From positions 310,001 to 374,000 of the forward strand of contig CDROCS010002469.1 of NCBI GenBank assembly GCA_977020255.1: a DNA stretch of 64,000 nucleotides, in the 5' to 3' direction. The notes under the pieces were generated by a model. The model searched no databases, had not been told where the DNA came from, and saw nothing but the letters and a program-made list of their open reading frames with translations. Position numbers and translations under genes: made by a program. Positions 28,008-45,055 of this stretch are shown here, one piece after another. This DNA is from Obrimoposthia wandeli (taxonomy: Eukaryota). The first letter of the stretch is position 1; each line of letters opens with the position of its first letter.

Positions 28008-28568
28008 GTTGTAGATATCACCAATAAATTTTCATTTAATTTACTAATTCTTTGTAATCTGTCAGTTGTCAATTTCTCATTTGCATGTAGCTTAATAAAA
28101 GCCTACTGTTTATGGCAAATTCATCAATTCAAACAAGAAAATTTAGAATACGATTCGCTGGTTGCTACTGTTAGTAAATCTTAACTGTATTAAATTGTCG
28201 TTATTGTACATTGATGGGGATAGATAATAGAACCTCAAGGGTAAAATAAAAACAATCAAATCAACGACAGCTTTAGCTATTAAAAGAAGTTTTCCTTAAA
28301 AGTAAGTTTTTACTCTCTACACCCTTAATCAGCGCCCTTAAACATGAAACTATTTAACGCATTTCAAGATCCAACTACCAGCAATATTATGCATAACATG
28401 CTTGTTTTTCATTTTAAAAATTCATACAAAGTGAAAGTAACACTGGCTACAAATAGAGGTTACTTCTGGTTGATGCTTAGATAGAGGATATCGAAAAGTA
28501 AAACAGTATTTATAAAAAACAGCGGCTGTTCTGATAAATCTAGTTCCTTGAATTCGTGTACATAAGTA

Positions 28569-28719
28569 CATTGCTGCCCGGTTAAAAAATCTAAACTCTC
28601 TAACTCATTTATTTGTGACTTTTAGCATAGTTAATTGGATTATTTCAGCTACATCACACTTATGATTAACGTAAAATCAATAAGTTATAGAACAACAAAA
28701 ATTAAACCGGACACTAATG
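28569..28719. mobile_element. MITE, copy 2 (151 bp), inverted relative to copy 1
   Basis: Arms match the reverse complement of 14165-14317 at 44/49 and 50/54 nt, centre diverged. Flanks ACATAAGTA / GAATAAGTA (7/9, degenerate TSD). Confidence 0.8.
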
Positions 28720-28831
28720 GAATAAGTAACGGCTTTTATCGAACAACCTTGTTTTTACAAAATATTTAGATTTAGATAGATAATAGGGTAGCTTGTGGCA
28801 GCAACACTTGCAGAAATATACTTATTAAACA

Positions 28832-29716
28832 CTATGCCACGGCGAGATCTTGCTCTGAACAAGTCACTATCTCAAAAGCATCTGTATTAGACAATAACTT
28901 CTTAACTATTTGGTTATTCATAAAATGGCCAGTTTTAAACCCGACAAACTCTCCGATTAAACTATGCCCCAGTAAGTACACATCACCAACGGCATCTAAC
29001 ACTTTATGCTTTGAAAACTCATCCTCAAATCTAAGGCCATCACCATTAAGAATAGATGTTTCATCAACCACAATAGCATTTTCCATACTGCCACCACGCG
29101 CTAAATTATTGGCACGCAAGTATTCAATATCACTCATAAAACCAAAAGTGCGCGCTCGACTAATTTGCTTTATAAAATTTTCACTGGTCAGCTCAAGCTC
29201 ATATTTCATGTTCTTCCCAGTAAAAGCTGGGTGATCAAAATCTATTTCGACACTCAATTTACAACCATTATAAGGCTTAAAGGTTGCTATCTTTCCTTCA
29301 TGAGTAAAGCTCACTTCTTTAATAACTCTAAGGAATTTTTTTAGCGCAAATTGCTCTTTAACACCCGCTGCTTTAATCAAAAATATGAAGGGAGCTGCCG
29401 AACCATCCATAATTGGCACTTCTTCTGCATTGAGTTCTACCACTACGTTATCTATACTCATCGCTGCTAACGCCGACATCAAATGCTCTATTGTCGCCAC
29501 TTTAATATCGTTGTGCACAATATTAGTCGATAAAACTGTATCTTTTACTAGAAATGCATCTGCAGCGATTTCAACGGCTGGATTTAAATCGACACGGCGA
29601 AACACAATACCGCTATCAGCCGGAGCAGGTAGCAAATTAAGATAAACTTTTTCGCCAGTGTGTAAACCTAGTCCGCTCGCCTTAATACTGCTTTTTAATG
29701 TCTTTTGTTTAATCAT
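28832..29716 (-). CDS. lpxC: UDP-3-O-acyl-GlcNAc deacetylase
   Basis: [38 protein letters not shown]. Confidence 0.97.
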
Positions 29717-29766
29717 TTAAAGATTACATTTCCTGTCTTTATTAAAGCTTTACTAACAGTTAACCG

Positions 29767-30942
29767 TTATTCGCTTCGTCTTCTTAAAAAAGTTGGGATA
29801 TCGAACATATCTTCCGATGTTTTAACTTTATTTACTACTGGCTCAGCTTTACCGTCGAGTAACGCTTCTTGCTGCTGTCTTCGTAACACAGTGGGTAGTT
29901 CAATTTGATCCAAATCGGCATCATAGTGCTTTTTTGGTGCATTTTCGGTTTTACTCTTTTCCACAACGACTTCTAAGTTCTGTTGCTTTTTTTCAAACCC
30001 AGTCGCCACTACCGTCACTTTCAGATCATCGATAAGATCAGTATCTATGACCGTTCCTATGACAATAGTTGCATCGTTTGATGCGTATTTCTCAATTATA
30101 TTACCAACTTCACTAAACTCACCTAAAGTTAGATCTAAACCAGCGGTAATATTCACTAAAATACCACTCGCACCTTTTAAATCTACATTTTCAAGCAATG
30201 GGCTATTTATTGCACCTTCTGCTGCAATCGCCGCTCTATCATCACCGCGAGCTTGATCTGAACCCATCATTGCCATGCCCATTTCAGACATCACAGTGCG
30301 CACATCTGCAAAATCGACATTGATCATACCAGGGCGAGTAATTAGTTCTGCGATACCCCGCACGGCACCCAGTAACACATCATTTGCGGCAGCAAAAGCC
30401 TTGATTAAACTGGTACTTCTACCTAGCACTTTCATTAGCTTTTCATTGGGTATGATGATCAGCGAATCCACTTGATCTCGCAGTTCTTGCAGCCCTGCTT
30501 CGGCTAACAACATGCGTTTTTTTCCTTCAAACGGGAAAGGCGTTGTCACGACTGCAACCGTTAAGATACCTAAGCTTTTTGCTACTTCTGCAACAATAGG
30601 CGCTGCACCAGTACCTGTACCTCCTCCCATTCCAGCAGTGATAAAGATCATATCGGCACCGTCAATAGACGCCGCTATCGCATCGCGATCTTCGATTGCC
30701 GCTGCCCGACCTATATCCGGATCGGCACCTGCACCCAAACCTTTTGTGGTCTCACAACCTAGCTGTATGGTTTGATGTGCATTAATACTGCTTAAAGCTT
30801 GTGCATCTGTGTTTGCACAAATGAACTCGACAGACTCTAATTCAGCAACTAGCATGTGTGCGACGGCGTTACCTCCACCTCCACCCACACCAATCACTTT
30901 TATAATTGCTCCAGGCATATCATCGTCTTCTATACTAAACAT
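29767..30942 (-). CDS. ftsZ: Cell division GTPase FtsZ
   Basis: GVGGGGGNA, GGGTGTG signature, NVDFAD, C-terminal DIPTFLRR. ATG 30942 lies 5 nt after AGGAGG. Confidence 0.98.
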   Translation of the reverse strand: MFSIEDDDMPGAIIKVIGVGGGGGNAVAHMLVAELESVEFICANTDAQALSSINAHQTIQLGCETTKGLGAGADPDIGRAAAIEDRDAIAASIDGADMIFITAGMGGGTGTGAAPIVAEVAKSLGILTVAVVTTPFPFEGKKRMLLAEAGLQELRDQVDSLIIIPNEKLMKVLGRSTSLIKAFAAANDVLLGAVRGIAELITRPGMINVDFADVRTVMSEMGMAMMGSDQARGDDRAAIAAEGAINSPLLENVDLKGASGILVNITAGLDLTLGEFSEVGNIIEKYASNDATIVIGTVIDTDLIDDLKVTVVATGFEKKQQNLEVVVEKSKTENAPKKHYDADLDQIELPTVLRRQQQEALLDGKAEPVVNKVKTSEDMFDIPTFLRRRSE

Positions 30943-31041
30943 ATTCACCTCCTACCAAATGACTGCACTTTTACTGTAAACAATAATAACTCATCTACAG
31001 CTGCATTATTTTTTAAATTTTATCTAATCACAATTTGTTAC

Positions 31042-31905
31042 TTATTTAGTTTCTTGTGCTTGCATCGCCTCAAGCGCTTTTGCTCGCCATTTAACAGAGA
31101 CTCCATTGGTATAGCGAACATCAACACGCGCTATTTGATCCGCTTTCAAATGCAAATGACCTTGGTATAACTGCAAAAAACGTCTTAGTCTCGCTAGAAT
31201 TTTTTCTCGGCCCAGCTCTACTTCTATTTCATTATTTAAGAGTAACGTCCATGCTCCTCTATCTTGCAATGATAACCCTTGCATATAGCTATCACTTCCC
31301 TTAAAAAAACGGCTTAAAGTATGGTATTGATCCATCACTCTAGCAGTATCTGTTGATGGCCCATTCAATATTGGTAAAAAATCTAATTGATCGCGCTGTT
31401 GTGGCCAAAAGATGTCGCCTTGATGGTTCAACAATCCTTTTTTTCCCCATTTTGCGACTGGCACTTGCTCTTGAATATCTACTTTAAGCGCCGGTGGCCA
31501 AACACGCTTTATCGCTGCATTATTGATCCATGGCTCTTCTACTGTAAGCTGCTGTATTTCTTGGATATCCAAGGCTAACATTGAATCAATATTGCCAGAG
31601 GTACGCATTTGCGTGATTAGTTTTTCAATCAACATATCTTTGTCAATGTACTGCGTGTCTCCAGTAATACTCAACTTTTGTATCGGCTGATCAAGTATAC
31701 TCCACAAGGCAATAGCCGCGTTAAACATCAAACCGCAAAACAACGCAAATGCCGTTAATATCATTGCAGGACGCACGTACCAGTCATTCGCTAGGTTAGC
31801 AATCAAACCATGAGGCCCTTGCTCGTGATCAATAACCTTAATAGCCGCAGGCTTCTTCGTATCTTCTAAAACCGGTTCTATGTCTTGCTTACGCCATTGC
31901 AACAT
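31042..31905 (-). CDS. ftsQ: Cell division protein FtsQ
   Basis: Single TM, POTRA (PWINNAAIKRVWP), EQVPVAKW, VDVRYTNGVSVKW. Start refined to ATG 31905. Confidence 0.92.
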   Translation of the reverse strand: MLQWRKQDIEPVLEDTKKPAAIKVIDHEQGPHGLIANLANDWYVRPAMILTAFALFCGLMFNAAIALWSILDQPIQKLSITGDTQYIDKDMLIEKLITQMRTSGNIDSMLALDIQEIQQLTVEEPWINNAAIKRVWPPALKVDIQEQVPVAKWGKKGLLNHQGDIFWPQQRDQLDFLPILNGPSTDTARVMDQYHTLSRFFKGSDSYMQGLSLQDRGAWTLLLNNEIEVELGREKILARLRRFLQLYQGHLHLKADQIARVDVRYTNGVSVKWRAKALEAMQAQETK

Positions 31906-32002
31906 TGTTACCTTTTGTTCTCCTGACTTATATTCATTTACTACTGCCTTGAAAATACAACTTTTGACTTTACTTAAAGGTACTAGTGAACTTGGTTGTA
32001 TA

Positions 32003-33457
32003 TTAATCTTGCTTAGAGTAATCCAGTTCACTGAGTGTATGAGCCAAGGCTGTGATATCCCCTGCCCCCTGAGTAAGCAAAATGTCTCCTGCACGTAATA
32101 TATTCTTTAATAGACTGGGGACTACTTCAACACTATCAACAAATACGGGTTCAAGCTGCCCTCGCTGCCTTATGCTGCGACACAAACTGCGACTATCAGC
32201 GCTGGGTATAGGGTCCTCACCTGCTGCATAGACTTCTAAAAGCAGTAAAGAATCAACATCCGAAAGCACTTGCACATAATCTTCATATAAATCGCGCGTT
32301 CGTGTATACCTATGCGGTTGGTTAATCATCACTATACGTCTACCTGGCCAGCCATTTCTAACCGCTTCAATCGTCACTTGTATTTCTCGTGGATGGTGAC
32401 CATAGTCATCAACCAGCATCACTGAACCATCTTTAACTGGCAATTCACAAAGTACTTGGAAACGTCTACCTACCCCTGAAAACGCCTCTAATGCATTAGT
32501 AATTGCGCTATCATCTATTCCTTCATCCGTCGCCACCGCTATACTTGCTAGCGCGTTTAAAACATTGTGATTGCCCGGCATATTAACGGTGACCTGTAAA
32601 TCATCATGTTGTTCAGGGCGCACCACTGTAAAATGCGTTTTCATACCTTTTTGACTAATGTTAATTGCTCGATAATCAGCACCTTCCTCTAAACCGTAGG
32701 TAAGCACTGGGCGATTAATTCTATCGCGTATTTCGCGAACAACTGAATCATCAGTACAAAGTACTGCTAAGCCATAAAATGGTAGGTTATGTAAAAAATC
32801 TACAAAAGTTTGCTTAAGTACATTGAAGTCACCGCCATAAGTATCCATGTGGTCTGTATCAATATTTGTGACAATGGCTACCATGGGTTGTAAATGTAAG
32901 AAAGAAGCATCACTTTCATCCGCCTCCGCTATTAGATACCGGCTTGCGCCTAATCTTGCATTAGTACCAGCGCTATTTAAACGCCCTCCAATGACAAAAG
33001 TAGGATCTAACCCTCCTTGTGCAAACACAGATGCAAGCAAACTCGTGGTGGTCGTTTTACCATGTGTTCCTGCAACAGCAACACCATGGCGATAACGCAT
33101 CAACTCCGCTAACATTTCAGCACGGCGCACTATCGGTGTATGTGCAACGCGCGCTGCAATAATTTCAGGATTTGTTTCATCAACAGCGGTTGATGTAACA
33201 ACAACATCAACATTTACTACATTTGTTTGCTGATGACCAATATAAACTTTCACCCCTAATTTTTCTAAGCGCTGAGTCGTCGCCGATTTTTTAATATCAG
33301 ATCCAGATATCTTATAGCCTTGATTACACAACACTTCAGCTATACCACACATACCCACGCCGCCAATACCGACAAAATGAATACGTTTAATTCTACGCAT
33401 TTCCGGTACATCATAATTTGCTTCTGCCAGCGTAGGTGCTTTACTTATCTTGTTCAT
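32003..33457 (-). CDS. murC: UDP-N-acetylmuramate--L-alanine ligase
   Basis: [33 protein letters not shown]. Confidence 0.97.
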
Positions 33458-34551
33458 AACATTTCCTTAAGACAGATGTTGGCGACCGTTGTCGATGCTT
33501 TTGGCAAGGCCACCTGCTGAGCTTTAGCTGCCATCTGTGAAAGCAGTTGCCTATCTTTTAACTGATCCAGTAATTGACTTAATTTTTGGATACCTAAATC
33601 CGTTTGCTGCACCAAAATTGCCGCACCGGCTTGTTCTAAAAATTTTCCATTTGCCGTTTGATGATCATCTACAGCCGCTGGAAAAGGTACTAATATTGAC
33701 GCGACTCCAGCAATAGCTAACTCAGACACTGTTAATGCCCCTGCACGGCAAATAACTAAGTCTGCCCAGGCATAAGCACTATGCATGTCCTCTATGAAAG
33801 CATCTATTCGAGCCTCTACTTGCGTATCTTTATAATGTTGCACAGTTTCATCTATATTTCTGATACCTGCTTGGTGCCATACGTTAGGTCGATCCTGGAC
33901 ATCGATTGTCGCTAGTGTATCTGGCACTACTTTATTAATGGCCATCGCACCTAAACTGCCCCCCACTACTAATACATTTAATTTACCAGTTCGCTGTGCA
34001 TACCTTTCACCACTGGCTTTCATATTTAAAATAGCACCGCGGATTGGGTTACCGACTACTTCTATGTTATTTTCACTATCACTGCCAAAAGCCCCTGGAA
34101 ACGCCGCTAATTTGCGCTTCGCCATTTTCAGCGATAGTTTATTAGTCATGCCTGCTTTCGCATTTTGTTCGTGAATGATCAAAGGCACGCCACTTAGTTT
34201 GGCAGCAACAGCACCTGGCCCTGATGCAAACCCTCCCATGCCCAACACTACATCTGGTTGCACATAATCAAATACTTTTTTAGCCTGCCAAATCGCCTTT
34301 AAAATTAGCCACGGTGCTTTTAATAAGCTTAACTTTCCTTTTCCACGTATGCCTTTCACAGCAATACAGTGCAATTTAATCTCCGCAGCAGGCACAACTC
34401 TTGCCTCAATACCTGCAGCTGTGCCTAACCAGTGAACGGTTACATTGTGTTCACGTAATAAATCAGCAACCGCTAGAGCAGGAAATACATGCCCACCCGT
34501 ACCGCCCGCCATAATCAGCGCTTTTTTATGTAAAGGTTGCTCAGCGCTCAT
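33454..34551 (-). CDS. murG: Lipid II GlcNAc transferase
   Basis: [35 protein letters not shown]. Confidence 0.97.
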
Positions 34552-36062
34552 ATCGATTCTCTATTAATTTTTCGTTTTGCTTTAGCTTGATCAAATGTTT
34601 TACTCTGTTTTCTAGTGTTGTTTGGGCTAGCATTTTGCTGCACTTGTATACGCTCTTGTGCTGTTTCTTCCCGAAACTGTGATATATCTTGCGTTTCTTT
34701 ACTTTGTCTTTTGTTCTCTGCTTTTACTTTATTTCTTCGCGGCTTTTTTGCAGAGCTGTCGTTTTCAAAATCTTCATTTTTATGAGCATCTAATGAGCTT
34801 TCTTGTTCAATATTCACTTCAATTTGTGCTAGCAAATACTTGGCGCCAATAGATTCACTAACTAAAAAATCACCGCCTTCTCCCACTTTAAGCCGCTGCA
34901 GCTTCAGTTCGTAATCTATGCGCAAAATAACGGCAATCATTGCGGCACAAACAATCAAACTGCTACCACCATAGCTAAGTAACGGCAGTGTTAAACCTTT
35001 AGTTGGCACTGCGCCAACGTTAACCCCAATATTAATTAAAATTTGGGCTGATAGCACAAGCGCGAAACCATAAGTCACGAACGCCATGAAAAATTGTTGC
35101 TGCTTCTCTGCTTGCCTTCCAATACGAAAAACGCGAAAGACTAAAATGGTATAAAGTAGAACAATTGTGATCGCTCCCAACAATCCCAATTCTTCGGAAA
35201 GTACAGAATAAACGAAGTCAGTATGCGCTTCAGGTAAATAAAATAATTTCTGAACACTGTTACCTAACCCTGTTCCGAACCACTCTCCTCTACCAAAGGC
35301 AATCTGTGCTTGGGACAATTGATAACCACTGCCAAAAGGATCAGCCCATGGATCTTGAAACGACTTAAGTCTCGCTACACGATAAGGCTGAATCACCGCC
35401 AATGATCCAACGGTGACTAATGCACCGGTTAATATCACCAAAAACTGACTAAAGCGCATACCGCTTAAAAATATCATTCCCATAACAGACGCCATTAACA
35501 CCACCGCGGCGCCATAATCAGGTTCCATTATTAATAAAAACACAAAAAAACCTAATGGTAATATTGGCCTAACGACACCTTTCCAACTATTTCTAACATC
35601 GGTTAATCGCCTAACTAAATAGCCACCTAAATACATGATCATGCAAAATTTAGCCACTTCTGAAGCCTGTAAATTGAGCATACCCGCTCTAATCCAGCGT
35701 TGAGATCCGTTCACCTCTTTACCTATACCTGGCACTAACACCAGCACTAACAACAACATTCCCAACGCTAGTAACCAAGGGCCTGCGCTATACCAACGCT
35801 TTATAGGTACTTTCCAAACAATTGATCCACCTACAATTGCCACCACAATGAACATTCCATGGCGCATTGAAAAGAAAAAAGCGTTGTTAAAGTTTTTTGC
35901 GGCCACATCTAATGACGCCGAGGTAATCATCACAAAACCCGTCAACATAATGAACAAAGCGCTGATCAGTAACAATGCATCAAAGGGAAGCTTACCTTGA
36001 GGAATAGTAAACCAACGCTCAATAACACTTTGATCTGTTAACCACTTAGGCTCATTCAACAT
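34548..36062 (-). CDS. ftsW: SEDS peptidoglycan polymerase FtsW with long C-terminal extension
   Basis: NGSQRWI, QASE, EPDYG, GYQLSQ, LPEAHTDF, GLTLPLLSYGGSS. The family core ends at LRIDYE and is followed by 118 hydrophilic residues. Confidence 0.96.
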   Translation of the reverse strand: MLNEPKWLTDQSVIERWFTIPQGKLPFDALLLISALFIMLTGFVMITSASLDVAAKNFNNAFFFSMRHGMFIVVAIVGGSIVWKVPIKRWYSAGPWLLALGMLLLVLVLVPGIGKEVNGSQRWIRAGMLNLQASEVAKFCMIMYLGGYLVRRLTDVRNSWKGVVRPILPLGFFVFLLIMEPDYGAAVVLMASVMGMIFLSGMRFSQFLVILTGALVTVGSLAVIQPYRVARLKSFQDPWADPFGSGYQLSQAQIAFGRGEWFGTGLGNSVQKLFYLPEAHTDFVYSVLSEELGLLGAITIVLLYTILVFRVFRIGRQAEKQQQFFMAFVTYGFALVLSAQILINIGVNVGAVPTKGLTLPLLSYGGSSLIVCAAMIAVILRIDYELKLQRLKVGEGGDFLVSESIGAKYLLAQIEVNIEQESSLDAHKNEDFENDSSAKKPRRNKVKAENKRQSKETQDISQFREETAQERIQVQQNASPNNTRKQSKTFDQAKAKRKINRESI

Positions 36063-36067
36063 AGTAT

Positions 36068-37432
36068 TTAAAGCTCACTAGCAGCAGCAGTGAAAACTTC
36101 GCCACGTTGTTCATAATTATCAAACATATCAAAACTGGCACAGGCAGGTGATAAAAGCACCACTTCTCCAGCATTTGCAATTGCAGCGCTTTGTTGTACT
36201 GCTTCTTGCATGCTCGCTACAAAAAAAGTTGGAGTTTGAGGTGCAATCTTCGCTATCTTTTTAGCATCAGTACCTATTAACACAAGTGCTTTCACGTATT
36301 TTGATATTGGTTGCGCTAAATCATTAAAACTAGCACCTTTTCCATCGCCGCCCGCAATTAATACTATTTTTTTATCTTGTGTTAAAGTAGCCCCAAGGCC
36401 TTCTAATGCCGCCACCGTCGCTCCTACATTAGTACCTTTTGAATCATTAAAGTAAGCTACTTCGTTTTTATGTACCACTAATTGGCAACGATGCTCTAAA
36501 CCTTTAAAATCAGCGATAGCTTTTAGCATTGCCTGCATGTCAAGTCCTGCAGAGTATCCTATCGCTAACGCAGCTAGCGCATTCTCAGTGTTGTGTCGGC
36601 CAGGAATGGTTATTGCATCTGTAGCCATCAGCGGCTTTTTCGCTAACGCCAAATATTCTTTTTCTCCACCTTCTAGCTGAATGGTCATTAAGCCAAAAAT
36701 TTTAAAATCAGACACTCCCAAACGATACCCTACAACACCGACATCTTTAGGCGTTAACGGATGAGTTAGGGCATCACCTAAATTTTCGACAACGTTTTTA
36801 CAGCCGCGAAAAATACGGTGCTTTGCCTGATAGTACTTTTGAAAATCATTATCATATCTATCTAAATGATCAGGGGTAATATTGAGAATAGTCGCTACAT
36901 TCGCTCGTAAATCATGTGTGGTCTCTAGCTGAAAACTTGACAGTTCCAATACATATAAATCTTTTTCAGGCTGGTCCAAAAAATCGAGTACTGGTGTACC
37001 GATATTTCCACCTACGCCCACACTCATGCCACTGGCCAACGCCATTTCACCGACTAAAGTCGTTACTGTGGTTTTGGCGTTAGAACCTGTAATCGCAATA
37101 ATAGGAGCGCTTACTTCTCTACAAAAGAGATCTATATCACCAATTAATACAGCGCCATGGCGTTGGGCAAATATAATATTAGTATCTTTTATGTCAATGC
37201 CTGGACTAACAATTATCTCACTCGCTCTTGCAAGTAGTTCTCTATTTAAGGGCCCTAAAACGACTTTAACATCAGGATACTCACTTCTAAATCGCGCCAA
37301 GTTGGAAGGATTATTCCTAGTATCCATCATTACAAAATGCTCACCATTTCTTGTGAGCAATTTGGCACACGACATTCCGGTAACTCCCATGCCGATTATG
37401 ATTTTCAATTGATCACTAGCGATTAAATTCAT
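36068..37432 (-). CDS. murD: UDP-MurNAc-L-Ala--D-Glu ligase
   Basis: ITGSNAKTTVT, LELSSFQLE, DHLDRY, NDSKGTN, LSPACASFD. Confidence 0.97.
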   Translation of the reverse strand: MNLIASDQLKIIIGMGVTGMSCAKLLTRNGEHFVMMDTRNNPSNLARFRSEYPDVKVVLGPLNRELLARASEIIVSPGIDIKDTNIIFAQRHGAVLIGDIDLFCREVSAPIIAITGSNAKTTVTTLVGEMALASGMSVGVGGNIGTPVLDFLDQPEKDLYVLELSSFQLETTHDLRANVATILNITPDHLDRYDNDFQKYYQAKHRIFRGCKNVVENLGDALTHPLTPKDVGVVGYRLGVSDFKIFGLMTIQLEGGEKEYLALAKKPLMATDAITIPGRHNTENALAALAIGYSAGLDMQAMLKAIADFKGLEHRCQLVVHKNEVAYFNDSKGTNVGATVAALEGLGATLTQDKKIVLIAGGDGKGASFNDLAQPISKYVKALVLIGTDAKKIAKIAPQTPTFFVASMQEAVQQSAAIANAGEVVLLSPACASFDMFDNYEQRGEVFTAAASEL

Positions 37433-37439
37433 AACTAAC

Positions 37440-38522
37440 TCAACGAATTTTCAAGGTAGCAAGACCGATCAATACCAGTACCACGGTAATAATCCAAAAA
37501 CGCACAATAATACGGGGCTCAGGCCAGCCTTTAAGTTCAAAGTGATGATGAATGGGTGCCATTCTAAAGATACGTTTACCTGTTAATTTATAAGAGCCAA
37601 CTTGCAGCACAACAGATAAAGTTTCCATTACAAATACCCCCCCCATAATGACTAGCACTAACTCTTGGCGTACGATAACAGCAACAACTCCTAATGCAGC
37701 ACCTAGCGATAACGCACCAACATCTCCCATAAATACTTGTGCAGGATAAGTGTTAAACCAAAGAAAGCCTAAACCTGCGCCAACAATGGATCCACAAAAA
37801 ATAATCATTTCGCCAGAGCCATTTATATAGGGAATATTCAAATAACTCGCAAACTCAACATGACCACTTAAATACGCAAACACACCCAAGCCCGCAGCAA
37901 CCATAACGGTTGGCATAATAGCTAGGCCGTCTAACCCATCTGTTAAATTGACTGCATTGGAAGTACCTACAATCACAAAGTAGGTAAATACAATAAAGAA
38001 CAAACCCATGTTAATCGCGATATCTTTAAAAAACGGCACTATTAATTGCGTCTCTACTGGTGATTGAGCTGTTGAGTACAAAACAATAGCAGCACCAAAG
38101 CCCCCGATAGACTGCCAAAAGTACTTCCAACGCGCAGGCAAGCCTACTGAGTTTTTTTCAACAACTTTACGCCAATCATCTACCCAACCTACGCCACCAA
38201 AAATAAAAGTGACGCCTAGCACTATCCATACATAACGAGAGCTTAAATCAGCCCATAATAAAGTACTTATGCCAATTGACAGTAAAATAACTGCACCACC
38301 CATGGTGGGTGTACCCGCCTTAGACAAATGGGATTGAGGACCATCGTTACGAATAGACTGCCCTATTTGCTTTTCCTTTAAGAAACGAATCATCTTAGGC
38401 CCTAAATAGAGCGAGAGTACTAAAGCGGTAATAACTCCCATGATTCCTCGTAAGGTGAGATACTGTAGAACAGCAACGCCATTTAAGTATTGAGAGAAAA
38501 ATTCAGACATTAATAATAGCAT
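37440..38522 (-). CDS. mraY: Phospho-MurNAc-pentapeptide transferase
   Basis: [36 protein letters not shown]. Confidence 0.97.
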
Positions 38523-39895
38523 TAGCGAGAAACCTCTTGTGTTAATTCAGTGACCACTTGCTTCATCCCGGCACTCAAGGAGCCCTTTACTAATACTTTG
38601 GTATTTCTATTCATCATTGTTTTAAGTTTTTCAATCATTTGATCTTTATTCATAAAATCACAACTATCAGTTGCTGTTATTTTCGCAAATTCACGCGCTG
38701 CGAATGCACCTTTGGGACCACAACTGAAAACATAATCAATGTTTTTTGCTGCGGCATACGTTCCTATACCTGTATGCATTTGTAGTTCATCAACACCAAG
38801 TTCAGCCATATCACCCAGTGCTAAAATTTTTTGCCCGGGTAATTGTGCTAATAAATCTAAACCAGCTTTTACTGAATCCGGATTCCCATTGTAACTATCA
38901 TCAATTACAGTGGCATTATTCAAACCTACTAAGGCTTTTAAACGACCACCTATGGCTGTAGCATTTTGTAAACCTGTTACAACGTCTTGTATGCTAAAGC
39001 CTATTGCAAATGCGCTAGCAGCAGCGGCTAAAGCGTTTTGTACATTATGTAATGCTAGTAACTGCAATTTCACCAGACTACTTTGTGATTTAAAATGCAG
39101 CCTGAACTGATAACTACCGCCAGATAATTGTTTAAGATCACTGGCGTACACATCTGCTTTGGTATTTTGTAAACTAAAGGTTAAGCAATTTTTATCAACG
39201 ATTAATTTTTGCCACTGCCCAACATTAGCATCATCTAAATTCAAAATAGCAGTGCCTTGCTCAGATAATCCTTGAAAGATTTCTCCTTTCGCTTTCACCA
39301 CTCCTTGTAGACTGCCAAAGCCCTCTAAATGCGCCCCCATGGCGTTGGTAATAATAGCGACATCCGGTTGTGCCAGTGCAGTGCAATAAGCAATTTCGCC
39401 TTCTGCATTTGCTCCCATTTCTACGACACAGTATTGCTGTTTGCCATTTAAACGCAGCAGTGTTTGCGGTACACCAATTTCATTATTTAAGTTACCAAGG
39501 GTCGCTAGAGCGGCCCCTTTAACTGTTAATATTGATGCAATAATTTCTTTAGTGGTTGTTTTTCCATTACTTCCGGTAACACCAATTAATGGCCCTTGAT
39601 AAAAGTTTCGATTTATTCGCCCGATATCACCCAGCGCTATATGACAATTTGGTACGATTAATTGAGGAACATCTAACGCTAACACTCTTTCGACTATTAA
39701 TGCGGCTGCACCATTATTAACTGCTTGTTGGCAAAAATCATGACCGTCAAAGTTTTCACCTTGTAATGCAAGAAAGACATCACCCGCTGCTACTTTGCGC
39801 GTGTCTGTTGATATTTGATCAAATTGACAATCACCGTTCTGCAACTTACCGCCTATTGTCAAAGCTATTTCTGATAGCTGCATAACATAACTCAT
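38522..39895 (-). CDS. murF: UDP-MurNAc-tripeptide--D-Ala-D-Ala ligase
   Basis: [37 protein letters not shown]. Confidence 0.96.
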
Positions 39896-41466
39896 ATCCC
39901 CTCCCTTTGATCCACCAAACGATTAACCGAAAACTTATGTTGTATTGCTTCTGCTACTACTTGTGCATCTAAGAAAGGATATTTAACTTGCATAATTTCT
40001 TGATAATCTTCATGCCCTTTTCCTGCAATCAACACTACATCTTGTGAAGAGGCCGTTAAGATGGCATCAAATATCGCTTGTTTTCGATCACTATTAACTT
40101 GAAACTTTCCATCTGCTGAAAAACCTGAACATACCATTTGAATGATAGTATCCGGGTTTTCCGTGCGCGGGTTATCACTCGTAACTATTGAATAATCCGC
40201 AAACTTCTCAGCTATTTCTGCCATTTCAGCTCTTTTTCCCGTATCTCTATCGCCACCACAACCAAATACAACTTTTAACTTTCCATGGCAATGAACACGA
40301 CACGCTTGTAAAGCTTTTTCTAGTGCATCTGGAGTATGAGCATAGTCCACCACACACAATGGCAGATGAAAACCAGACTCTGATAACAACGTAGCACTAA
40401 CCTTTTGCATACGCCCTGGTACTGGTGTCAACTGGTTTAAACTGCTTTGTATTTGTTGATCACTAAAGCCTAATCTGAGCAGCACACTACTACACAATAA
40501 TAAATTCGCTATATTAAATTTACCTATAATTTGACTATCGATTTTAAGAAGTCTTCCCGGTAGGTTTAAATCAAACTTTAGGCCTTTCTCTAGATTTACA
40601 TCTACTACCGATACAGTTGCGTTTATTTCTGCATTTACACTGTAAGTAACAATGCTTTGCTCCATACTACTCGGCAAGCTTGCTAGTAGTTCGCGATTAT
40701 AGGCATCGTTAGTATTCAAAATACGGTGATCAGCTTTAAATTGGCTAAATAGTCGACCTTTTGCTGCTGCGTAGGCCTGCATACTGCCATGATAATCTAG
40801 ATGGTCTCGACTCAAATTGGTAAAGGCAACTGCATTAAAATCAGTACCTGAGACGCGCCCTTGCTCTAATGCATGAGAGCTAACTTCCATAACAACGGCT
40901 TCAGCTCCCTGATGATAAAACTCGGCAAATAACTGCTGTAATGCACAGGCATCAGGGGTTGTTCTACTTGCAACTTGTAAATTATTTGGGTGCCCGTTAC
41001 CTAAAGTACCAATAATAAAAGTTTTTAATGCTAAAGAATTTAGTGATTGTGCTAAATAATGAGCACAAGAGGTTTTTCCATTCGTTCCTGTTATTCCGAT
41101 AATCGTTAGCTGTTGAGCTACATTGTTAAATACTTTCGCAGCGATAGCTCCAATCTGCTCATTTAACTTATCAATAGCAATGACAGGGATTGGGTAATTT
41201 ACTAAATCCACCTCACTGACTGTGCTCGCTGTTTTTTCTATTAAGGCAGCAATAGCTCCATTACTTGCCGCTGCTTTTATATATTGGGTTCCTTTAAAAA
41301 ACTCACCGTCTCTGGCGACAAACAAATCACCTTTAACGATATTACGGCTGTCCTCTTTTATGCCAGTCACTTCAATATCTAACAATTTTTCAGCATTGTT
41401 TAAATGTATATATTGCGCTACTATTTTTGCTAAAAGCGGTATTGGTAACTCTTGCTTATTATTCAC
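39892..41466 (-). CDS. murE: UDP-MurNAc-dipeptide--meso-DAP ligase
   Basis: GTNGKTS, MEVSSH, NLSRDHLDYH, DYAHTPD and the DAP-specific DNPR motif. Confidence 0.96.
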   Translation of the reverse strand: MNNKQELPIPLLAKIVAQYIHLNNAEKLLDIEVTGIKEDSRNIVKGDLFVARDGEFFKGTQYIKAAASNGAIAALIEKTASTVSEVDLVNYPIPVIAIDKLNEQIGAIAAKVFNNVAQQLTIIGITGTNGKTSCAHYLAQSLNSLALKTFIIGTLGNGHPNNLQVASRTTPDACALQQLFAEFYHQGAEAVVMEVSSHALEQGRVSGTDFNAVAFTNLSRDHLDYHGSMQAYAAAKGRLFSQFKADHRILNTNDAYNRELLASLPSSMEQSIVTYSVNAEINATVSVVDVNLEKGLKFDLNLPGRLLKIDSQIIGKFNIANLLLCSSVLLRLGFSDQQIQSSLNQLTPVPGRMQKVSATLLSESGFHLPLCVVDYAHTPDALEKALQACRVHCHGKLKVVFGCGGDRDTGKRAEMAEIAEKFADYSIVTSDNPRTENPDTIIQMVCSGFSADGKFQVNSDRKQAIFDAILTASSQDVVLIAGKGHEDYQEIMQVKYPFLDAQVVAEAIQHKFSVNRLVDQREGI

Positions 41467-43186
41467 TTTTCACCGCCGATTGCTGTTTTTCTGACTCTTT
41501 TTTTGGCCATTGATCAGGAGAGATATTCAACATGCGCAATGCTCCCGTAGTGACTCTAGAAAAAATAGGGGCAGCGACTCCGCCGCCAGAATACTGTTGT
41601 CCTTTCGGGTTATTTACCATAACAACGACAGCTATTCTGGGATTACTTGCCGGCGTGATACCTGCAAATACTGAAATATACTTATCTAAATCATAGCCAC
41701 CGCGACTTGCTTTGCGTGCAGTACCTGTTTTTCCAGCAACACGATACCCAAAAACAGCAGCCTTACGTCCAGTACCACCTTTATCAATTTGCGTAGTGGT
41801 TTCCATCATAGTGACAACATCGTTGGCTACGTCTTTTGGAATAATACGTGTACCTCTGGGAGCTTCATCAATTTTTAACAAACTAACAGGGACTTTCACC
41901 CCATTGTTTGCTAATACTGCATAAGCTTGCACAAGCTGAATAGGGGTAACAGATAATCCATAACCGTAGGACATTACAGCTCTTTCAATCACTTGTCGCT
42001 CAGAGTAATAAGGTAATTCGCCACTTCGCTCCCCTGGAAAACCTGTGCTTGATAACCCCCCTATACCCACATTGGAAAACAAGTTATGCATAGTATCAGG
42101 CTCTAGCGATAACGCTAACTTTGTTACCCCCACGTTACTTGATTTAGTAATAATTCGAGTTAGTGTTAGGTCCCCGTAATCTCTAAAATCTTTAATCTTT
42201 TTACCTTTAATAAATATATAACCAGGCTTAGTAGCCACTATAGAATCTCTGTTATATTTACCGCTCATTATCGCTGCTGCAATAGTGAACGGCTTTACAG
42301 TAGAGCCCGGTTCAAATACATCCGTTAATGCTCTATTACGTAACTGCTCTCCTGTCAAAACGCTGCGATCATTAGGATTGTATGAAGGCTGGTTTACCAT
42401 CGCTAGCACTTCACCCGTTTTAACATCCAAAATAACTACAGATGCTGAATCAGCTTTGTGGGATTTCACCGCCGATTTAAGCTCTTTATACGCTAAGTAT
42501 TGCAGTCTAAGATCTATGCTAAGGGCGATATCGCTACCTGTTTCTGGTTCTTCAATGAGCTTAATGTTTTTTATCACTCGCCCTAGTCTATCTTGCATGA
42601 CAAGCTTCTTTCCTTCGCTGCCAAGTAAAGAACTTTCGTAAGCAAGCTCGATACCCTCTTGCCCAGCGCCATCAATACCTGTAAACCCTACTAAATGCGT
42701 TGCAACTTCCCCCGCTGGATAATAGCGCTTGTACTCGCGGTCAATGTTGATACCTTTTATACCTAATGCAACTACCTTTGCTGCTAAATCAGGTGATATT
42801 TGCCGCTTGATATATAAAAACTCTCGTTTGACGTTTTTTTTCAATCTGCGAGTTAACAATTGCGGCTTTTTATCCAGTAATTTAGCCAGTTGTTTAAGCT
42901 TTGCATCATTCACATTTATAACTTGTGGATTAGCCCAAACAGCTGCTACTGGAGCACTCACTGCTAAAGTCTCTCCGTTTCTATCAGTGATAACACCTCT
43001 ATGAGCAGGCATTTTCATCGTGCGGATCGAACGCTTATCACCTTGTGTTTGCAGAAAATCTCTATCATAAGTGTAAAGGGAAACCAACTTTGTCACTATC
43101 GCAACAGCTATTAAAGAAAGAAGCCCACAAACTAACCATAATCGCCAAGCTCGAGAATGCTGAAGGCCTATCACTTTATCGCTCAT
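41459..43186 (-). CDS. ftsI: Septal transpeptidase PBP3
   Basis: RGVITDRNG, SxxK (STVK), SxN (SSN), KTGT. Confidence 0.96.
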   Translation of the reverse strand: MSDKVIGLQHSRAWRLWLVCGLLSLIAVAIVTKLVSLYTYDRDFLQTQGDKRSIRTMKMPAHRGVITDRNGETLAVSAPVAAVWANPQVINVNDAKLKQLAKLLDKKPQLLTRRLKKNVKREFLYIKRQISPDLAAKVVALGIKGINIDREYKRYYPAGEVATHLVGFTGIDGAGQEGIELAYESSLLGSEGKKLVMQDRLGRVIKNIKLIEEPETGSDIALSIDLRLQYLAYKELKSAVKSHKADSASVVILDVKTGEVLAMVNQPSYNPNDRSVLTGEQLRNRALTDVFEPGSTVKPFTIAAAIMSGKYNRDSIVATKPGYIFIKGKKIKDFRDYGDLTLTRIITKSSNVGVTKLALSLEPDTMHNLFSNVGIGGLSSTGFPGERSGELPYYSERQVIERAVMSYGYGLSVTPIQLVQAYAVLANNGVKVPVSLLKIDEAPRGTRIIPKDVANDVVTMMETTTQIDKGGTGRKAAVFGYRVAGKTGTARKASRGGYDLDKYISVFAGITPASNPRIAVVVMVNNPKGQQYSGGGVAAPIFSRVTTGALRMLNISPDQWPKKESEKQQSAVKSE

Positions 43187-43526
43187 AGCTCACCATTTCT
43201 ACATTCTTCGATTTTGGCACATGCATGGCTAATCTTCGTTTTGCTATTTTTTCTACACGACTGTTAGCGCCCAATGCACTTTGCTCTAACAGTAGTTGGC
43301 CCCATTCCACTTGCAATTCATCGCGATGCGCGACAATTTGCTGCTGTGTGTTAAACAACTGTCTGAACTGATAAGCCTGATAAACAATTGAGATGCCACT
43401 GATGACTATACAGAGAATTAATATTGCAACGATTATCATTGGACGACCAATTTCATTCGATGTCAGCAACACCTCATCAGTATTTTCAGACAGAGCGTCT
43501 TGGAGAACCAGCTCTGTTTTACTCAT
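43176..43526 (-). CDS. ftsL: Cell division protein FtsL
   Basis: Short cytoplasmic N-terminus, one TM, coiled coil with EWGQLLLEQS; located between rsmH and ftsI. Confidence 0.92.
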   Translation of the reverse strand: MSKTELVLQDALSENTDEVLLTSNEIGRPMIIVAILILCIVISGISIVYQAYQFRQLFNTQQQIVAHRDELQVEWGQLLLEQSALGANSRVEKIAKRRLAMHVPKSKNVEMVSYER

Positions 43527-44464
43527 GCTATTTTTTCTGTCACTCTCATAACCGCACTGCGAGATCGAGGATTTTCATCTATTTCTGTCTTACTTGCTTT
43601 CACTTTTTTACTGATATCTTTTAATCGACAACGCAGCATATCATTTGTGTAAGGAATACCTTGTGGCAAGTGATCATCACCTTTTACATGCCTTCTTATA
43701 AAGCGCTTCACTATTCTATCTTCTAGGGAGTGGAAGCTAATAATGACCAGACGCCCACCGATCTCTAATGACTCAAGCGCTCCATCCAAACACTTTTCTA
43801 AATCACTCAATTCTTGGTTCACTTGGATTCTAATTGCTTGGAAGGCGCGCGTAGCCGGATGTTTGCCTTTTTCCCACGAAGGGTTCGCATCTTTTACAAT
43901 TTGTGCCAAATGCGCGGTTGTTTCAATTGCGTTTTTTTCACGCTCGGCCACAATTGCTTTAGCCATTCGGCGCCCAAACTTATCTTCCCCATAGGTATAA
44001 ATAACATCAGCAATTTCTTTTTCACTCGCCCTTGCTATCCACTGCGCTGCACTTTCTCCTGAGGTTGTATCCATACGCATATCTAATGGGCCATCATTTT
44101 GAAAGCTGAAACCTCTGCTTGCATCATCCAGTTGAGGAGAACTCACTCCTAAATCTAAAAGTATCCCTTTGATTTTTCCATGCTGACCTGTTTGATTAGA
44201 AAACTCTTCTATTTGAGCGAAGGAGCCATGACAAATAGAAAATCTAGCATCGTGTGAAAAATGCTCTTGTGCGAAACTAATTGCTTCTAAATCTTTGTCG
44301 ATGGCCATTAATTTACCATCGTCACCCAGTGCATTTAATATCTTATTACTGTGTCCGCCACGGCCAAATGTTCCATCCACGTAGAATGCAGAGTCATCAG
44401 TTACCAAAGCATCAACCGCTTCTTGCAACAATACTGTTATATGCTCAAAATGCTCATTATTCAC
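43523..44464 (-). CDS. rsmH: 16S rRNA m4C1402 methyltransferase
   Basis: HITVLL, DGTFGRGGHS, DLGVSSPQLD, LDMRMD, FHSLEDR, NPRSRSA. Confidence 0.97.
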   Translation of the reverse strand: MNNEHFEHITVLLQEAVDALVTDDSAFYVDGTFGRGGHSNKILNALGDDGKLMAIDKDLEAISFAQEHFSHDARFSICHGSFAQIEEFSNQTGQHGKIKGILLDLGVSSPQLDDASRGFSFQNDGPLDMRMDTTSGESAAQWIARASEKEIADVIYTYGEDKFGRRMAKAIVAEREKNAIETTAHLAQIVKDANPSWEKGKHPATRAFQAIRIQVNQELSDLEKCLDGALESLEIGGRLVIISFHSLEDRIVKRFIRRHVKGDDHLPQGIPYTNDMLRCRLKDISKKVKASKTEIDENPRSRSAVMRVTEKIA

Positions 44465-44532
44465 TTAATACCACCTTCACTGAGGCCTTGCTCAGTATTT
44501 AATTAATACTTCTTAAATTTAAATCTTGATTC

Positions 44533-44991
44533 TTATAAAGAAAGAGATTGTAAATCTACCGGCAGCTCAGATTCACTGTCTGATAATTGTAAATACTCTT
44601 CTCGTGTCTGATTCCAAAGTTCGTCATTCCAAATCTCAAATTTTTTCCCTTGCCCTAATAAAATAACCTTCTTATCAAGTTGTGCATATTGCCTTAATGG
44701 AGCACTTATCAATAACCGCCCGTTAGCGTCCATTTCAACATCTGTGGCATGACCTAATAACAAACGCTGAATTCTGCGTGCATCTTTATCGAAACTGGGC
44801 AATGCTTCTATTTTCTGCTGAATCTCTTCCCATTCGTGTAAAGGGTATAGTAAAAGACAACGTGATTCAGTATCAATCGTTACTACCATCTGCCCCTCAC
44901 AATGCACACTCAACTTCTCTCTATACCGAGACGGAATGGCCATTCGACCCTTAGCATCCAAATTAATTGGATTAATGCCACGAAACATCAT
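44533..44991 (-). CDS. mraZ: Transcriptional regulator MraZ
   Basis: FRG...LDAKGRMAIP and MDANGRLLI repeats. Start refined to ATG 44991/44988. Confidence 0.96.
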   Translation of the reverse strand: MMFRGINPINLDAKGRMAIPSRYREKLSVHCEGQMVVTIDTESRCLLLYPLHEWEEIQQKIEALPSFDKDARRIQRLLLGHATDVEMDANGRLLISAPLRQYAQLDKKVILLGQGKKFEIWNDELWNQTREEYLQLSDSESELPVDLQSLSL

Positions 44992-45029
44992 GTCAATGTG
45001 ATTTACTGCTACAAAAAACCATACAAAGC

Positions 45030-45055
45030 CCCACTTTTTCCCACTTCTACCCACT
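45030..45055 (-). promoter_or_regulatory. MraZ binding site: three GTGGG direct repeats at 10-nt period
   Basis: Minus strand reads AGTGGGTAGA AGTGGGAAAA AGTGGG, matching the known TGGGN repeat operator of MraZ. Confidence 0.85.

Follow-up and report, generated by a model that had tools for sequence, protein, structure and literature searches.

The clade to which the bacterium described here belongs carries an intact ftsA at a locus far from its dcw cluster, where ftsQ is followed directly by ftsZ. Our main reading, to which we give a probability of about 0.85, is that ftsA and ddlB were deleted from the dcw cluster in a clade with a prior ftsA-ftsZ duplication, and that FtsA was retained at a second locus, here called the satellite locus. 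We define a duplicated ftsA-ftsZ module as a second pair that is unlinked to ftsQ and present besides the dcw ftsZ. The clade falls under this definition, with the satellite pair and the dcw ftsZ in place, minus the dcw ftsA. Because a dcw copy and a satellite copy occur together in most of the family, the simplest account is a duplication after which the dcw ftsA was lost. The idea of an FtsA-less gammaproteobacterium fails, and divisome rules find no exception here.

The window, that is, the whole 64-kb stretch of DNA that was analyzed, spans positions 310001-374000 of a 453-kb bacterial contig (C2469). Its source assembly (G000) comprises 1.35 Gb in 6912 contigs, and about 24 full-length ftsZ loci from different bacteria are spread across it. 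The assembly is thus that of a host together with its microbes. Among these loci, two ftsZ genes have many in-frame TGA codons, as in a recoded genetic code, and one contig carries two tandem ftsZ genes (recoded and tandem side loci, C425:98841-101153, C1539:9608-11940, and C3593:89287-91729). The closest kin of the window form an Osedax-symbiont clade within the Neptunomonas/Marinobacterium family. In a protein search, the FtsQ of the window was 86 to 89% identical to that of Oceanospirillaceae metagenome-assembled genomes (MAGs) and 61 to 63% identical to matches whose sources name them Osedax symbiont Rs1 and Rs2. We set the clade by an FtsQ identity of at least 54%, which gave genomes G005 and G180 to G190. 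Its single-contig genomes include G180 (5.06 Mb, source name Osedax symbiont Rs1) and G186; G190 is a multicontig MAG. No RNA runs containing the window stretch were found.

The gene order in the window is mraZ-rsmH-ftsL-ftsI-murE-murF-mraY-murD-ftsW-murG-murC-ftsQ-ftsZ-lpxC, with all of these genes on the minus strand. The ten genes from murG to mraZ (33454..45054) were identified with Pfam, except for ftsL, a 116-amino-acid open reading frame (ORF) at 43176-43526 that was assigned by position alone. FtsW has 504 amino acids (34548-36062), and its Pfam match extends to about residue 386 and is followed by a tail of about 118 residues; the FtsW proteins of relatives have 512 to 525 amino acids. 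murC (32003..33457, with its stop at 32003) encodes the three Mur ligase domains in Pfam. By the gene coordinates, only 97 bp (31906..32002) separate murC from ftsQ, and the dcw ddl is missing from this ddlB position, where the interval in canonically ordered relatives measures about 950 bp and encodes a 321-amino-acid Ddl. The clade has one longer ddl gene outside the cluster; in G180 it lies at 2.559 Mb, and C3444 in our assembly has a match to it. ftsQ itself (31042..31905, with a TAA stop at 31044-31042) encodes 287 amino acids with POTRA_1 and FtsQ_DivIB_C domains in Pfam. The mechanically called ORF begins at 32094, comprises 350 amino acids, and runs into murC. The real start is likely the ATG at 31905, which a GGAG motif precedes, and the resulting 287 amino acids fit the 285 to 289 amino acids of homologues that are 54 to 89% identical.

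Between ftsQ and ftsZ, at the usual position of ftsA, lies a 99-bp spacer (30943..31041) that is AT-rich and noncoding, without any ORF. A ribosome-binding site, TAGGAGGT, precedes the ftsZ ATG at 30942-30940 on the minus strand. When the spacer was aligned with those of five relatives, conservation was limited to the ribosome-binding site and the start codon, and the length was variable. We observed one weak sigma-70-like match within it (31033-31005); a scan for promoters and terminators over 30700-32200 gave counts that were not above those of shuffled sequences. The dcw ftsZ (29767..30942) encodes 391 amino acids and matched Pfam Tubulin and FtsZ_C at 165 and 110 bits and TIGR00065 at 426.9 bits (cutoff, 295). 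Its product is full length, with the GTPase and C-terminal domains, the GGGTGTG signature, and the tail ...DIPTFLRRRSE, and to judge from its residues this C terminus is the canonical partner-binding peptide. lpxC (28832..29716; Pfam LpxC, 344 bits) lies directly 3' of ftsZ, as in other gammaproteobacteria, and secA lies beyond it. The intergenic stretch between secA and lpxC (28008-28831, about 820 bp) holds no listed ORF of at least 60 amino acids; in enterobacteria, secM occupies this interval.

A tblastn search with FtsA protein found no ftsA anywhere in the 64-kb window (best E value, 8.2). The local picture given by the original prediction thus stands in each of its parts: coordinates, Pfam, and an ORF check agree on ftsQ followed by ftsZ across a 99-bp AT-rich spacer without ftsA; the ribosome-binding site is present; there is no FtsA remnant; and the other dcw genes except ddl are intact and in the canonical order, with ftsL again judged by position. 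The same holds for the dcw order of sister genomes, since five relatives have murC-ftsQ-ftsZ-lpxC.

This junction is real and lineage-wide. Only the odd gene order itself speaks for an assembly in which ftsA was collapsed or deleted between ftsQ and ftsZ. However, the identical arrangement, without ddl and ftsA, recurs in five or more relatives with independent assemblies (G005, whose FtsQ is 86% identical to that of the window, G180, G186, G185, and G190) as well as in ENA and Logan contigs. The spacer is also bridged by Logan short-read contigs from a public run, one of which corresponds to 30897-31071 (X3), while another (X1) covers 30566-30976 and 30947-31368 without a break. The Logan run may be from the assembled sample, in which case it represents a different assembly and not independent biology. 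With relatives sharing the order and contigs crossing the spacer, the misassembly that had earlier been raised for this junction does not hold up, and we give an assembly artifact practically no credence.

An intact ftsA exists elsewhere, at the satellite locus, both in the clade and in the same assembly. Two contigs of G000, C5358 (27.9 kb) and C6408 (73 kb), carry intact ftsA and ftsZ genes and no ftsQ. Their gene order is rmuC, a 1.26-kb gap, ftsA (435 amino acids), ftsZ (410 amino acids), a class IV aminotransferase gene, and a LysR regulator gene. The satellite FtsA matched TIGR01174 at 515 bits (cutoff, 176) and Pfam FtsA in two stretches plus SHS2_FTSA. It has the SHS2 (1C) insert and a C-terminal amphipathic helix, and it ends in ...FKTWLTGNF like other FtsA proteins. 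It is 94% identical in amino acids between G000 and G180. The satellite ftsZ scored 428 to 430 bits against TIGR00065. Both contigs are syntenic with G005:C196 at 85 to 89% nucleotide identity, a distance comparable to that between the window and the dcw contig of G005 (85 to 88% identity), and their GC content (38 to 40%) is close to that of the window (39%). There are 20 FtsA-like matches in G000, each adjoining an ftsZ; thus, the assembly has no lone ftsA. Among these 20, only those on C5358 and C6408 are outside a full dcw cluster and of the right lineage. Of the two options in the original prediction, relocation of ftsA therefore stands in effect, through the satellite copy, and division without FtsA does not, given the one intact ftsA of the clade and its locus on these two contigs. 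As a history, however, relocation is not fully accurate, since most of the family has both copies.

The gap 5' of the satellite ftsA (about 1.26 kb, 30% GC; L101:5538-6801 on C5358) has no ORF of at least 100 amino acids and is kept across the clade (also L102, L108, L123, L125, and L127). We found no remnant of ftsQ or ddl within it in six genomes. The gap may represent an extensive regulatory region.

C5358 and C6408 are 91.6% identical to each other. We found no second dcw contig of the window's type in G000, where C2469 is the only one. Over 29500-32500, the Logan contigs include a second variant of ftsZ and ftsQ that is 90 to 95% alike and has about half the depth. This suggests that two related strains coexist in the sample. 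With two satellite contigs, one dcw contig, and the Logan variant, one of the satellite contigs would be that of a co-resident sister strain.

We then surveyed 190 species genomes of the Neptunomonas/Marinobacterium family for copies of both genes. At least two ftsA genes were present in 119 of the 190 genomes and at least two ftsZ genes in 146. Complete two-copy genomes have the dcw ftsQ-ftsA-ftsZ plus an unlinked satellite ftsA-ftsZ. In three named relatives, Marinobacterium litorale, Neptuniibacter pectenicola, and Nitrincola alkalilacustris, one ftsA is in the dcw cluster and a second in an unlinked satellite pair. The full dcw order was found in the two-copy relatives and in the outgroups Marinobacter, Hahella, Halopseudomonas, and Teredinibacter. 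By comparison, G005 and G180 to G189 each have one TIGR01174 match (about 515 bits), which never adjoins ftsQ and is always followed by the second ftsZ. The two genes are 1.7 to 1.8 Mb apart in both single-contig clade genomes, with ftsQ at 1.906 Mb and ftsA at 3.685 Mb on the same contig in G180 and at 2.432 Mb and 0.753 Mb, respectively, in G186. One intact ftsA is thus present in 11 of the 12 clade genomes. The exception is the MAG G190, in which we found neither an ftsA match nor a satellite ftsZ match, and its lack of ftsA is most simply explained by genome incompleteness. The dcw ftsZ of G190 (G190:C102) is split into ORFs of 143 and 248 amino acids by an apparent 1-nucleotide deletion; the split (L099:7340-7400; L100; L128) appears in an ENA contig, a Logan contig, and a GTDB MAG, possibly all from one sample. 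A separate lineage, G070, also has ftsQ-ftsZ in its dcw cluster, and its satellite pair is 108 kb away.

Of the other division factors, ZipA_C was found in all five clade genomes tested (sites include G000:C3917:165297-165674, G180:C1:3879012, and G186:C1:2804951), in open frames of about 890 to 1034 amino acids. The usual ZipA is about one third of that length. The counterpart in G000 is a 963-amino-acid frame on C3917; this contig and C3444, with its 382-amino-acid ddl product, are tied to the organism by open-frame length only. We found no match to SepF (PF04472) over the cutoff in G180, G186, G005, or G185, and with ZipA and FtsA both present, the analogy once drawn to SepF-type division does not apply. 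A search for FtsN gave partial SPOR-type matches below the cutoff.

These data bear on whether the C2469 bacterium could truly divide without FtsA, with the satellite contigs contributed by relatives and ZipA as its sole tether. Such a reading is favored by the absence of ftsA from the whole 453-kb C2469, by the fragmentation of the symbiont genome, in which C2469 and C5358/C6408 are separate contigs, and by the unusually long ZipA frames. However, C2469 is only 453 kb, so the absence of ftsA on it is uninformative about the organism, and the satellite contigs stand at the distance expected from G005 within the same assembly. Likewise, G190 lacks an ftsA match but is only a multicontig MAG, and the remaining 11 clade genomes, two of them single-contig, each have one intact ftsA. 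This gene is strongly conserved, as its 94% identity between G000 and G180 and a dN/dS of about 0.02 indicate. We consider true FtsA-less division to be very improbable.

It could also be that one ancestral ftsA, alone or together with ftsZ, left the dcw cluster by simple translocation, apart from the family duplication. FtsA paralogues are homogenized within genomes, so that the sequence of the surviving copy would fit either origin, but the two ftsZ genes of the clade fall in the dcw and satellite groups of the two-copy genomes. The neighbors of the satellite pair do differ, with rmuC and the aminotransferase gene in the clade and EptA and GNAT genes in Marinobacterium; nevertheless, both ftsA copies are present in sister genera, and G070 independently reached the same outcome. 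Since duplication and loss also require fewer events, we regard translocation as unlikely and keep to duplication with later loss from the dcw cluster as our reading.

In the FtsZ tree, the family's dcw copies group in a single clade (SH-aLRT, 99), within which the lineages whose dcw cluster lacks ftsA are long-branched, with a stem length of 0.77 in the window's clade and a branch of 1.37 leading to G070. The satellite FtsZ proteins have short branches and an outgroup-type C terminus (...LDIPAFLRRQAD), and the dcw FtsZ tails read DIPTF/YLRR; both retain the canonical C-terminal peptide DIP[T/A]FLRR. Within a genome, the FtsZ paralogues are 70 to 86% identical where both ftsA genes are present and 62 to 65% identical where the dcw ftsA is missing. 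In the FtsA tree, the copies group by genome, with 77 to 99% identity between the two, which points to concerted evolution, and by this likeness the two FtsA copies look redundant. Between this assembly and G005, purifying selection is strong on all of these genes: dN/dS was 0.026 for the dcw ftsZ and 0.10 for ftsQ, and the two satellite genes, ftsA and ftsZ, had values of about 0.02. Thus, where the dcw ftsA has been lost, the dcw FtsZ has diverged faster yet is under purifying selection. The assembly also contains a third, orphan ftsZ (C3985:10811-12025; L107:6812-8026) on a 45.8-kb contig of 40% GC. Its 404-amino-acid product is about 60% identical to both other copies and has a very long branch. 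It is flanked by an AraC/DJ-1 regulator gene and a racemase-like gene, has no ftsA or dcw genes close by, and is without a counterpart in G005.

We propose the following sequence of events. The ftsA-ftsZ module would have been duplicated in an ancestor, giving the unlinked satellite pair, and the dcw-linked ftsA, and also ddlB, would later have been deleted in the window's clade. Because the FtsA copies are near-identical and so presumably redundant, one of them could be lost, which would have made the dcw ftsA dispensable. From the conservation of their C-terminal peptides, we infer that the satellite FtsA, together with ZipA, may tether both FtsZ proteins. The dcw ftsZ would then draw on promoters within or 5' of ftsQ and in the 99-bp spacer, its transcription no longer tied to ftsA. 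With the redundant ftsA gone from the dcw cluster, the dcw FtsZ may also have become free to diverge in function. A more tentative extension, which we put forward only as a possibility, is that most of the Neptunomonas/Marinobacterium/Amphritea family divides with two FtsZ and two FtsA proteins, the satellite pair being the conserved core machine and the dcw FtsZ a specialized paralogue. In the Osedax-symbiont clade, the uncoupled, fast-evolving dcw FtsZ might then have a distinct role while sharing the one FtsA and ZipA as tethers. If this were true, that role could lie in altered division or morphology inside host cells.

Across the family, the FtsA copies evolve in concert and the FtsZ copies diverge, and at least two lineages discarded the dcw ftsA yet retained both ftsZ genes. 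In Escherichia coli, the FtsA:FtsZ ratio and cotranscription of the two genes are considered critical. Against this expectation of coupling, evolution has repeatedly parted one ftsZ from ftsA here. Two-copy genera that are in culture, namely, Neptunomonas, Marinobacterium, Amphritea, and Nitrincola, make the roles of the paralogues directly testable. There is also a warning for annotation: a gene gone from a conserved cluster is not necessarily gone from the genome, especially where contigs come from a host plus its microbiome.

Compared with the canonical dcw cluster of E. coli and Pseudomonas (murC-ddlB-ftsQ-ftsA-ftsZ-lpxC), the window has the same other genes in the same order, including lpxC-secA, but lacks ddlB and ftsA, leaving spacers of 97 and 99 bp, and its ftsZ stands apart from ftsA. 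FtsA-less divisomes, with SepF-based tethering, are known from Actinobacteria and Cyanobacteria. The window shares with these only the local picture of ftsQ and then ftsZ; its lineage has FtsA and ZipA, no SepF was found in the four clade genomes searched, and it lies outside that category. FtsZ paralogues are known from other bacteria, and magnetotactic bacteria have the paralogue FtsZm. Hyphomicrobiales have the truncated paralogues FtsZ1 and FtsZ3 (PMC13732431), and a few phyla, such as Bipolaricaulota, have an extra ftsZ outside the dcw cluster (PMC9871819). Common to these and to our case is a second FtsZ outside the dcw cluster, with subfunctionalization suspected. Unlike in those systems, both FtsZ proteins here are of full length and retain the C-terminal peptide, a full-length ftsA forms part of the duplicated unit, which occurs in most of a gammaproteobacterial family, the faster-evolving copy is the dcw ftsZ and not the extra one, and the clade's only ftsA accompanies the non-dcw ftsZ. 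In the literature, as full text with incomplete coverage, we found no account of a duplicated full-length ftsA-ftsZ module in this family or of its differential loss. Archaea have a dual FtsZ1/FtsZ2 system that arose by ancient duplication and is tethered by SepF (10.1101/2020.06.04.133736). There, as here, two conserved FtsZ proteins occur in one cell, both under selection; in contrast, the duplication described here, known from sequence alone, is bacterial, is at the level of a family, and comes with FtsA.
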